A stretch of 64,000 bases of DNA, from positions 2,757,751-2,821,750 of the forward strand of contig OZ037773.1 of the NCBI GenBank assembly GCA_964035545.1. The letters are read 5' to 3'. The notes under the pieces are model-generated. The model had not been told where the DNA came from. It searched no databases and worked only from the letters and a program-made list of their open reading frames with translations. A program made the translations under genes and the position numbers. Source of the stretch: Bugula neritina. Its lineage: Eukaryota > Animalia > Bryozoa. Shown here in pieces: positions 42,301-63,933 of this stretch (its first letter is position 1; every line of letters begins with the position of its first letter).

Positions 42301-45300
42301 GAGTGACACACATGACCCTTGCCAGTACAGCATATAAATGACAAAGTACCCAACTGTGGTGCCTACCTTCAGTATTGGAACATGTAGCTCTAGTGTCACA
42401 TTGGTTCTTAAGGTAGTCACTAGTTACGGCGCATTCGTTCACGTCTCTCACAGATAAGTCGGCCTCTACAACATTCAACTAGTGTGACCTATTTTTAAGT
42501 AAATATAACACCTATCAGTATTTATCAGTAAGTTAAATTGAATGACAAAATTTCACAGAAATGTTAATTTCTAGCTTATGTATTTGCTATTTTATCCTAT
42601 ATTATGTAGAAAAATTTACTAGTTGAAAAAAAATCTTTGCAAGTTTACGTATTCGCAACAAAATTTACTTGAGCAAATTTTATCTAACAAAATAGTGTTT
42701 TCTTTTACCCAACAATGCATATATGCAGATATAAATAATACATAGAATGATATAAAATGGACTAGCTGTCATAAAAATATACATTTCAACTATTAATTAT
42801 CTTAAAAAGTTGCAATTCCCAAAAAATTCTGGTTCTAAAATGTTTATAGGGTTGTTTTACTTTGAAAATTGCTTTTATCAAAAGCTTCGCATTTTCGAAC
42901 AAAGACTTTCAAATGGTACGGCAGCTTTGTCTGTCCTACTAGAAAACTGTCTTACCGATAAAGCTGACATCCCGCTTGACTCTTCTCTGCGGAGCTAAGA
43001 TCTCCTCTCGAAGTTTATTGGCTGTCAAGTCTCCAGGGTTGTCATAGTTGAGAGATCTGTCTACGAGAATCATCACGTCATATGACCGTGAGCTGCTCTG
43101 TAATGAGAAGTCAAGTTATTTATAGAAGGCAGTACAGTTGGTCTCAGTTTAGTTATAAATCATTTTATATTATATATATTGTATATATATATATATATAT
43201 ATATATATATATATATATATATATATATATATATATATATATACAATATATATATATATATATATATATATATATATATATATATATATATATATTGTAT
43301 ATATATATATATTTATATATAATATATATATTATAATATTACTCCGTAGAACATTAGTATGATAGAGTGAAAATAGTTTTCATGATATTTGTGAGAGAAC
43401 AGTTGAGGGCGGAGCTGAAGAATGCAATTATTAGACCACAAGACTTACTGAACCACAGGCTAAAATATCGTGCACATAACAGGCAGTCATAGACCACAGC
43501 CTTCTGGAAAGTTCTAAACAGACAGCGCTCTCCTTGCTTTGGAATTCTGATGAGTCGACATCAGTAATGTCTACAAACCATATGACATAGTTAATACAAA
43601 AAATCGGAAGCAGAACAGTTCAGGAAAAGTTGATGTGAAACAGAGATTAGTCTTGGCAACACGATAAGAAAATTTTCATTTTTAAATCTATTTTAAAAAA
43701 AAATTTGTTATCAACTCCAACAGAGTTATTTAGGTTTGACTATAGCTATATAAACACAACATTAAACTGAGCAGTAAACAAATTTATAAATAGCTGAACG
43801 TGAGAAAAGTTACTGGAACTGACCAAACAAAAGACTTACCACCTGAACATGACTCATCTACAGTGAGGAACACCTGATAGAGAGTGATATCACCTGGTGG
43901 AACTGGGCGGTTGAACAGACCTCGTCCAACGTGAGCAGACGGTCTCTCAATAAATTCTGCAACAAAACCAGCGAGTTATTCAATCAGTACCACTAACTGC
44001 TTTCAGCTGATTCCTATTCTACACTTCAACTTTCAGTTCGTTTGAAACATATTAAACCCACATTTCTTCAAAGTGTTGAATTATAGGTATTAATTAATCT
44101 AGTTTATTTGATCTTAATATAAATGTGTGATTCGTGTAGCTTACTTTACTGCATTCTAAAATAAAACCTAAAAGATGTTTTTCATTAAACACTATTTGAA
44201 ATAGCAGAAGATAAAAGACACTCAGCACTGAGTGAGATATAACAATACAGCATGTCTAAGAACATGTTTATACTCGCCAGTTGTGGTTGTTGGTTGCGTT
44301 GTGGTGGGTGCAGCTGTCGTGGTGGGTGCAACAGTTGTAGTGGTGGTAGTCGGGGCAACATAGCATCTGTGACAGCACGTCTCCGAGTGCTCTTCACACT
44401 GATCAGCACTGAGATCTATTAACATAGAGAACACAGGCTAAGAGACAAGTGAAGGCAACTAACATATAGTAGGCTGCTGGTTATAACTCTGTACTCTAGT
44501 GCTTTCATCACAATATTTTAGGATAATACAGATTGCAACTTGAAATGTTTTAAGCTAGTAGCAATGAAGTTTAAATCATAAAAATAGGCTATGCTGAGAC
44601 GTAGTGCTGTTTATTATAATGTTAGGAGTTGTTTTACCTCTACAGTAGTCTGCTTTGTCTCCATATCTGCAGGATTGTGGGAGATCTGGTCTCAGTTCTG
44701 TGAGGCATTGTACGCAGCAGGCCTTCTCCCTGACAGGTGAGTAACAATCAGATGGTCTTTGAACCTGCATAATATATGGAGAAATACTGTGAACTCACCT
44801 TCAACATTGTCTTAGGAATATATGGACATTGTGAACCTATCTTTAAAAATGTCTTAGAAATATAAAAACATTGTGAACTCATTTTTAAAATGGTCTATAA
44901 AACTATCTTTGAAATGTAGAAAAATTGCAACTTTATTTTTAAAATTGTCTTTAATGTGCTGGATGTGCTGATTTAGAATCTAAGCACAAAGTTTCTATAT
45001 GACAGTATGCTGCCACAACAACAGACATCAAATGTGTTTCATTACATAATACAATAACTCTCAGTTTGAGTAAACTGTAAACTACTTGTATTTAATGGCA
45101 ACTTCTATATAGATAATAAATAGGGCAATGTAAATGAGTGAATCATAATGTATTAAAAAAGCCGGTACTATTATTTGTGGCCCATACCATTACTACTATA
45201 CTACCATATAATATTATAATGTAACATAATATAATATGATATGACATGCTATACTATAGAATAATGTGATATTCTATGATATACTACAATCATAGCATAG

Positions 45301-63300: not shown

Positions 63301-63933
63301 ATACTTTCAACGGAATAGGTCTGCGCGCCAGGTAAAACAGAAAAGACACTCTGAAGAGAAGCTGTGATTCCTTTTGCAAGGCTAGAGTAAACGTCAGAAG
63401 TGGAATCATTAAAATCCTGGCTACATTGCATCTCCATGACAACCAAGATAACAGCATATTCCACTACAACAAATCATCTCAAATGTTCCCACATGCACAA
63501 CTGTATGCTAGAATGTTTGTTAAAAGGCATTTGCCCTACCCAAGTACATATTTCTATATATTACAAGTTGAAAAAAACATTGAAAGCTTTTGAATACTCA
63601 AAAACTGACGCCCAACCTAGCATTCAAAAGTGTAAACTTTATCGAAAAATCGACATTCAGTTTAACGAAAATGTTGGAGCAAAACCTAACCAGTGTCCAG
63701 GAAGATGTTTTAGTGACACTCAAAAGCTGTTCAAGAATAAAACTACCATCATTTGTTGAAATGGAGTACCCCTGGAAACTCACCATACAAGTTGTCTACA
63801 ACTGGAATGGGCGTGACGTCTAGCTTAGAGTAACATTCGTTACAGCAGTCTCTGGCAACCTGCTCATCGTCACAGTTAGCATCTGCACACGTATCGACTC
63901 TGTTGCCAAAAGGACACATCTCCACATTGTACC
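39373..63933 (-). CDS. Giant type I membrane mucin-like protein with tandem PLAC-like 6-Cys modules, SEA domains, 2 Ca-EGF, TM and tail (5' partial; ~42 exons, ~2,200 aa in window)
   Basis: Phase-compatible exon chain from 63933-63784 down to 39456-39373 (stop TAG). Sixteen C-x-[YWF]-G-[DN] modules and ~15 CY...CCxxC modules with Thr-rich linkers. SEA domains at ~63463-62561 and ~53985-53059; SEA-like segments at 43956-42956 and ~41850-40957; EGFs DVNEC (42465-41850) and DVDEC (40756-40430); TM WAIALIIVGAVIVFIALMLAIVCLC in exon 40449-40246. Confidence 0.88.
41365..41592. repeat. 74-bp tandem repeat, 3 copies
   Basis: GCACACTGCACAC recurs at 41401, 41475 and 41549 with near-identical intervening sequence. 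Confidence 0.92.
43167..43336. repeat. Interrupted (AT)n microsatellite
   Basis: Direct reading. Confidence 0.95.
46380..46626. repeat. ~15-17-bp minisatellite (ACTGTAGATAATAT/A)
   Basis: Repeated ACTGTAG cores. Confidence 0.88.
47558..47769 (-). mobile_element. tRNA-derived SINE, copy 7
   Basis: Full-length family match. Confidence 0.9.
52505..52885. repeat. ~21-23-bp minisatellite (AGCACAACTACAATGTGTATT)
   Basis: More than 15 degenerate units. Confidence 0.88.
54215..54425. repeat. 33-bp minisatellite, ~6 copies
   Basis: Unit ATATATCGATATGATATTGACCGTGAGTTAGCA. Confidence 0.93.
60146..60566. mobile_element. Foldback element / MITE with ~200-bp inverted arms
   Basis: TGGGTCATTTTACTTAATTTAGT... 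mirrored by ...ACTAAATTAAGTAAAATGACCCA; complementarity continues inward (AAAACATCAATAAATACACCT / AGGTGTATTTATTGATGTTTT) almost to the centre near 60355. Confidence 0.82.
61995..62345. repeat. ~23-28-bp minisatellite (GTATAGTATGTACAGCATAGAAT)
   Basis: About 13 units. Confidence 0.9.
62853..63070 (+). mobile_element. tRNA-derived SINE, copy 8
   Basis: Full-length; TSD TAAGAAATTACA (62841-62852) / TAATAAATTACA (63071-63082). Confidence 0.92.

Follow-up and report, generated by a model that had tools for sequence, protein, structure and literature searches.

The DNA analysed here, below called the window, comprises 64,000 bases of the bryozoan Bugula neritina (bases 2,757,751-2,821,750 of contig OZ037773.1, denoted C9, of the 216-Mb assembly). 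Its minus strand probably carries the 3' half of a single gene of ~53 kb and 77 exons, which encodes a type I transmembrane mucin of ~4,010 residues, with small six-cysteine modules strung between Thr/Pro/Ser-rich stalks. In the full model, 77 GT-AG exons (12,030 coding bases) are joined in a single frame that runs uninterrupted from ATG to TAA and yields 4,010 amino acids (Cys 10.5%, Thr 15%, Pro 5.6%). The whole gene holds ~65 modules; the ~31 that the first-pass annotation, made from the window alone, had taken for the total are the share of the window, which contains the 3' part of the gene, and the array described there covers less than half of it. Like SEA-type membrane mucins, the model begins with a signal peptide, has stalks rich in Thr, Pro and Ser, crosses the membrane once and includes a SEA domain (domain 2 below).

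All positions are in window numbering, and "ext" coordinates carry this numbering beyond 64000 into the neighbouring DNA. Exon chains were obtained with a simple splice-aware dynamic programme followed by curation; the signal peptide, the stalk composition and the membrane span were judged by inspection of the spliced model, and the EGF domains, the SEA-like domains 1, 3 and 4 and the A-B module pairs of the window were assessed on exon pieces or on orthologues. Exon scoring that favoured cysteines was discarded, as it over-called low-complexity introns.

The module array and its conservation

Between 44363 and 63847 the minus strand carries 32 copies of the CC-x2-C motif that closes a module, against one on the rest of this strand and four on the entire plus strand. 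From 63933 to 44274 the minus strand yields 32 GT-AG exons, which form a stop-free frame of 1,721 codons. The module census of this curated chain gives exactly 16 B and 15 A modules in strict ABAB order, as had been read from the sequence at first sight, and the first A module, which completes the 16 pairs, lies outside the window (ext 64463-64356). Each module has ~30 residues and six cysteines, kept in 31 of 31 window modules with the spacing C-x(5-8)-C-x(8-10)-C-x(6-9)-CC-x2-C, the fifth cysteine being shifted in one of them. This A module (45834-45935) ends with C-x3-CC instead of CC-x2-C, while its orthologue in another bryozoan, Watersipora subatra, is normal, and one cysteine appears to have shifted by four positions in this lineage. 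Separately, the B module at 48029-48115 is followed by 15 bases that add two cysteines (C-E-D-C), giving eight in total.

The two module types are distinct in all 16 pairs. Tyr follows the third cysteine (CY) in all 16 A modules, counting the one just beyond the window, and in none of the B modules, all of which start with C-x-[YWF]-G-[DN]. A and B are joined by 9-17 residues (median 11), in which a D-L-P-like motif is frequent and Thr and Pro are not enriched. The segment following B varies from 7 to 132 residues; in 10 of 16 cases at least half of it is Thr, Pro or Ser, consistent with the stalk that had been described after most pairs, and in two cases it contains a SEA-like domain.

The exons of the array, in the order of transcription on the minus strand, are 63933-63784, 63463-63298, 62725-62562, 62478-62379, 61630-61481, 60811-60660, 59463-59275 and 59102-58895 (exons 1-8); 58735-58588, 58379-58237, 57759-57572, 57213-57101, 56987-56871, 56484-56256, 55892-55705 and 55057-54848 (exons 9-16); 54631-54499, 53984-53819, 53213-53059, 51208-51025, 50306-50173, 49507-49290, 48762-48522 and 48117-47932 (exons 17-24); 47389-47296, 47089-46972, 46788-46647, 46342-46170, 45944-45786, 45641-45465, 44764-44638 and 44415-44274 (exons 25-32). 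The first of them (63784-63933) carries the first B module of the window, the A partner of which lies just beyond the window end. Eight A-B pairs with Thr/Pro/Ser stalks occupy 14 exons at 54499-62478, where two junctions agree with the spliced Bugula neritina model P0008, and seven further pairs with stalks, the last stalk being a long Thr/Pro one, occupy 13 exons at 44274-51208, which match the Watersipora locus exon by exon. Small candidate exons at 60386-60354, 47823-47809, 53602-53582 and 52470-52453 and the acceptor 58708 were dropped on the grounds of frame neutrality and comparison with Bugula P0008 and Watersipora P0067. Many introns contain AT-rich minisatellites with units of 14-178 bases (41364-41596, 46380-46624, 52508-52886, 54216-54425, 60886-61138, 61995-62343), and a (TA)n tract of 174 bases is located at 43166-43339.

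Introns split many modules at differing points, and the spliced halves always restore a complete six-cysteine unit; exon scoring gave no reward for such reconstruction. Pairs compared within the gene have a median identity of 33% (19% when cysteine columns are excluded). The orthologous locus of Watersipora subatra (OY755162.1, 29.64-29.74 Mb) is colinear with this gene exon by exon at 40-61% identity, and the colinearity takes in stretches that RefSeq leaves unannotated. Since orthologous exons are more similar than pairs within the gene, the array is older than the split of the two bryozoan genera, and each pair has been kept individually. Moreover, the Bugula neritina model P0008 (84% identity) joins three exons just as is done here, and environmental fragments show 91-94% identity. 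An exon finder always yields some open frame, and these exons are predicted from genomic DNA, so that one might take the array for a decaying or unexpressed repeat and the long frame for a product of exon chaining. This is extremely improbable, given the intact cysteines of all 31 modules, the matching halves of intron-split modules, the orthologue of each exon in the other genus being closer than any paralogue within the gene, and the identical joining of three exons in P0008.

Extent of the gene and its membrane-anchored end

Beyond the window end, the array runs on to ext 89,800. The part from ext 84.6 to 65.4 kb consists of ~25 single A-like modules lacking the CY motif, one Thr/Pro cassette each, and four further A-B pairs are located at ext 84.6-89.8 kb; the obligate pairing assumed in the first-pass annotation is thus true of the array in the window but not of the middle of the gene. 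At ext 72437-78416 there are eight phase-0 exons that are near-identical to one another, 144-160 bases long and, in seven cases, codon-symmetric. Each comprises one six-cysteine module and a Thr/Pro stalk, their splice-site contexts are identical, and the group looks like a recent cassette expansion within the same gene. The leader exon (ext 93068-93002, 29 kb beyond the window end) connects in frame to the acceptor at ext 89874, and the 22-residue hydrophobic leader at the N terminus is similar to the one with which the Watersipora orthologue P0019 begins. Upstream of 90 kb the composition-trained exon chain was noise, and this one leader exon was used instead. The 5' limit of the mucin gene is marked by its upstream neighbour on the same strand, 33-34 kb past the window end, which encodes a small acidic, possibly HYPK-like protein.

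Downstream of the array, the minus strand beyond 44274 encodes a possible SEA-like domain in three exons, two intron-split calcium-binding EGF domains that flank another such domain, and then a hydrophobic span followed by a tail and a TAA stop codon, in agreement with the beads-on-a-string membrane mucin proposed initially. In particular, the possible SEA-like domain 3 (42956-43956), placed by a weak alignment, ends with a furin-type R-V-K-R motif. It is followed by the first half of EGF 1 (42367-42465), matched below threshold by Pfam EGF_CA and EGF_3 on its halves, with the six-cysteine pattern complete once spliced, and by two exons (41909-41730 and 41202-40957, together 40957-41909) with the end of EGF 1 and the possible SEA-like domain 4, which aligns with domain 3 over 107 residues at 28% identity. 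The first half of EGF 2 (40613-40756) matches Pfam EGF_3 (E 1.8e-4), EGF_CA and EGF, all below threshold because an intron divides the domain. The last exon (40232-40449) supplies the end of EGF 2, a 23-residue hydrophobic span, a 20-residue cytoplasmic tail and TAA at 40234-40232.

Two more SEA-like domains are inserted in the array. Domain 1 is encoded by a frame-consistent exon pair at 62562-63463 (63463-63298 and 62725-62562) with a weak BLAST alignment to the Watersipora SEA domain. Domain 2, at 53059-53984 (53984-53819 and 53213-53059), aligns with residues 44-166 of Watersipora P0067 at 44% identity, and the structure model of P0067 residues 47-165 matches SEA families at template-modelling (TM) scores of 0.71-0.80 over 109-118 residues. 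Domain 2 alone is backed by the fold of its orthologue, the other three being supported by weak alignments, and the best Pfam SEA match has E 0.23; the protein may contain from two to four SEA-like domains. The autoproteolysis motif G-S-[VI]-V-V is absent from domain 2, which has G-N-V-V-A at this place, the Watersipora sequence being G-S-V-L-A.

From the N to the C terminus, the model thus consists of a signal peptide, four A-B pairs, ~25 single modules, a furin-type site, 16 A-B pairs with two SEA domains inserted, a long stalk, and then SEA-like, EGF, SEA-like and EGF domains, the membrane span and a short tail. The two furin-type sites are R-K-R-R (ext 67827-68006) and the above R-V-K-R (42956-43097); at the position of the former, Watersipora has R-R-K-R, just ahead of the end of its RefSeq model.

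We infer a single transcript for all 77 exons, and several observations weigh against this. Every exon junction is predicted from genomic DNA. In RefSeq the Watersipora locus is represented by three or more models, the first of which closes with a stop. The junction between the stalk and the SEA/EGF part is the weakest one, being out of frame at the strong acceptor 43956. The locus could accordingly be divided into two or three adjacent same-strand genes: one for an N-terminal mucin that is secreted, one for an array protein in the middle and one for a SEA/EGF protein anchored in the membrane. Such a division would fit the separately annotated Watersipora models that stop after the N-terminal 1,294-1,301 residues, as well as the stop codon met ~50 bases past donor 44274 on read-through. 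Other observations count against the division. The middle Watersipora model, P0067, has no leader, and both its ends fall inside modules: it begins within a B module and apparently ends by read-through after a B-module head. The third model (EGF_3, 919 residues versus 881 in the equivalent part here) begins in a conserved module exon, and the "intergenic" gaps of the Watersipora locus hold conserved module exons. In the Bugula gene no internal leader or start is seen upstream of 43956, and a direct splice preserving the frame exists: with the AG at 43943 as acceptor the join from 44274 stays in frame, as it also does through a 35-base exon (44227-44193) placed after a 46-base intron. The RefSeq annotation of the orthologous locus therefore looks fragmented, and we consider the division into several genes unlikely, and one gene the better description of the locus.

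Kinship of the module

The cysteine spacing of the window modules is that of the PLAC domain, with which they had been compared from the beginning, and this kinship is partly supported: cysteine spacing and weak Pfam matches agree with it, and the A-module profile and the predicted fold lean towards it, whereas the Pfam threshold is not reached and the B-module profile gives a low probability. Among 103 A-B pairs from relatives, PLAC is the commonest weak Pfam match (24 of 103, best E 4.9e-4). In hhalign comparison with a three-sequence profile of the Pfam-positive PLAC domains of this genome, A modules align with 75% probability over 32 columns, all six cysteines included, and B modules with 16%; A and B profiles align to each other with 73% probability. 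These three PLAC domains lie outside this locus, on contigs C1 and C3 and in another part of C9.

Other results count against PLAC. No module reaches the gathering threshold of Pfam PLAC (PF08686, 26.4 bits), the best score in the window being 17.4, and in Pfam scans of module exons, paralogues and whole relatives the modules are nowhere above threshold. The sole match among solved structures is weak (VIA-align Z 2.5) and points to the cysteine-rich domain of a snake-venom CRISP. Moreover, PLAC is normally single and C-terminal (PMC4349717), while here there are ~65 internal copies.

The structure of an orthologous Bugula pair, predicted with AlphaFold2 from the 103-pair alignment, is all-helical (predicted local distance difference test score, pLDDT, 91; predicted TM score, pTM, 0.72), and A and B with the 11-residue linker are confidently predicted to fold as one two-lobed unit. 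Single lobes superimpose on predicted PLAC-bearing proteins over 34-37 residues with a root-mean-square deviation of 1.1-2.4, and on ShK and CRISP about equally well; no solved PLAC structure turned up in these comparisons. Foldseek finds no match in the Protein Data Bank (PDB) at E up to 0.001, and the PDB sequence search with the pair profile gives nothing significant, the top non-significant match being CRISP-2.

These last results bring in another assignment, in which the modules are of the ShKT/CRISP type and the protein is a spiralian counterpart of the nematode surface-coat mucins with paired ShKT domains. Besides the CRISP-2 match and the confinement of solved-structure matches to CRISP cysteine-rich domains, it agrees with the language-model neighbours of the pair, which are ShK families (scores 0.81-0.82, leads only), with one relative labelled "ShKT domain-containing" by UniProt, and with the plan of Toxocara MUC-1, in which a leader is combined with a Ser/Thr-rich region and a pair of ShKT domains (PMC9477421). 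However, the terminal ShKT motif C-x3-C-x2-C is not present, the modules ending with CC-x2-C as in PLAC; Pfam ShK (PF01549) matches 2 of 103 pairs, with E up to 1, as against 24 for PLAC; and the family accompanies ADAMTS-type protease domains, as PLAC does. We consider the ShKT/CRISP assignment somewhat unlikely and describe the modules as PLAC-like, probably a highly diverged family for which there is no curated model.

The profile of A module, linker and B-module head, searched against 1.84 billion representative sequences, retrieves 211 proteins at E<=0.001, 68 of them at E<=1e-10. Of these, 28 were looked up: all named ones are from molluscs, annelids or bryozoans and are called "hypothetical" or "uncharacterized", in line with the initial impression that this architecture belongs to no characterized protein; the module family is experimentally uncharacterized and has no Pfam model. 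In many relatives an array of 3-20 modules stands behind Reprolysin and ADAMTS_CR_2 domains. Two bivalve proteins (Mactra P0001 and Mya P0002) carry an array of 17-18 uniform modules with a membrane span behind it. In the uniform bivalve arrays every module carries the G-D motif and CY together, and for this reason it seems that one ancestral module was divided into the A and B types seen here. Solemya P0003 has A-B pairs with Thr-rich stalks. Compared with the tandem modules of the spiralian relatives (M12B/ADAMTS_CR_2 proteins of Solemya, P0003, Helobdella, P0007, Lottia and Crassostrea; Mactra P0001 and Mya P0002), which number 3-20, there are ~65 in this gene. No SEA/EGF cassette was seen in these relatives, and most of them have a catalytic domain, not found here.

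The Bugula genome also contains paralogous mucin genes (contig C3, 12.77-12.93 Mb; C6, 10.69 Mb; C2, 24.02 Mb) that have one or two A-B pairs within one open frame, 332-859 codons long. On C3 and C6 the pairs are followed by a near-perfect P-T-T-T-T-T repeat of hundreds of residues, and at least seven profile matches are clustered on C3.

Comparison with known proteins and possible role

With canonical PLAC domains (PF08686; ADAMTS, ADAMTS-like proteins, papilin, PCSK5/6), the modules share the cysteine spacing within ~30 residues and the association with ADAMTS-type proteases, and the predicted helical knot may be common to both. They differ from the single C-terminal PLAC copy in being internal, numerous and of two alternating subtypes, each having its own motif unlike PLAC, CY in A and C-x-aromatic-G-D-basic in B.

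In vertebrate SEA-type mucins (MUC3, MUC12, MUC13, MUC17, and MUC16 with many SEA domains) the stalks are uninterrupted tandem repeats. They resemble this protein in the signal peptide, the Thr/Pro/Ser stalks, SEA and EGF domains beside a single span and the short tail, but here the stalks are broken by cysteine knots, and G-N-V-V-A replaces G-S-V-V-V; sequence kinship is undetectable outside the SEA and EGF folds. The CysD domains, of ~100 residues, belong to the gel-forming mucins MUC2 and MUC5AC, which are secreted and polymerize. As small disulfide-rich domains breaking O-glycosylated stretches, they are a functional analogy, with an unrelated fold and size. Finally, Toxocara canis Tc-MUC-1 to -5 combine a pair of six-cysteine domains with a Ser/Thr-rich mucin part, as the C2, C3 and C6 paralogues do; they differ in belonging to another domain family by cysteine spacing and in being small, secreted and unanchored, with one pair versus twenty in this gene.

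The function of the protein is entirely a matter of inference, which weighs against the mucin reading as well. O-glycosylated stalks would hold rigid, protease-resistant knots off the apical membrane and, together with them, would make a glycocalyx or a cuticle-anchoring layer. Each knot would be one of a series of binding sites, and the SEA domains and the two furin-type sites would permit shedding. By analogy with the mollusc and annelid arrays, which stand in for thrombospondin repeats behind ADAMTS-type catalytic domains, an extracellular matrix component or an ADAMTS-type protease is the probable binding partner.

A more specific proposal, which we regard as quite unlikely to be correct as a whole, is that the A-B pair is an undescribed two-lobed unit which serves the ADAMTS-type proteases of molluscs, annelids and bryozoans as their targeting arm in place of thrombospondin repeats, and that the mucin, with 20 pairs and no catalytic domain, is a cell-surface docking or decoy platform for the same matrix ligand. 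If so, it would compete for the ligand or present it, tuning protease action at the epithelial surface.

The advance is descriptive and does not answer a long-standing question. Both the ancillary arms of numerous ADAMTS-type proteases and certain very large surface proteins are built from this module family, and this gene, with its ~65 modules, is the richest example found. Its A-B pairs, diverged and individually conserved, form a clean set for a domain model and for work on structure and ligands. Moreover, the gene model indicates that bryozoans have mucins that are anchored by SEA and EGF domains and whose stalks are interrupted, a point of interest for the evolution of animal surface coats and cuticles.

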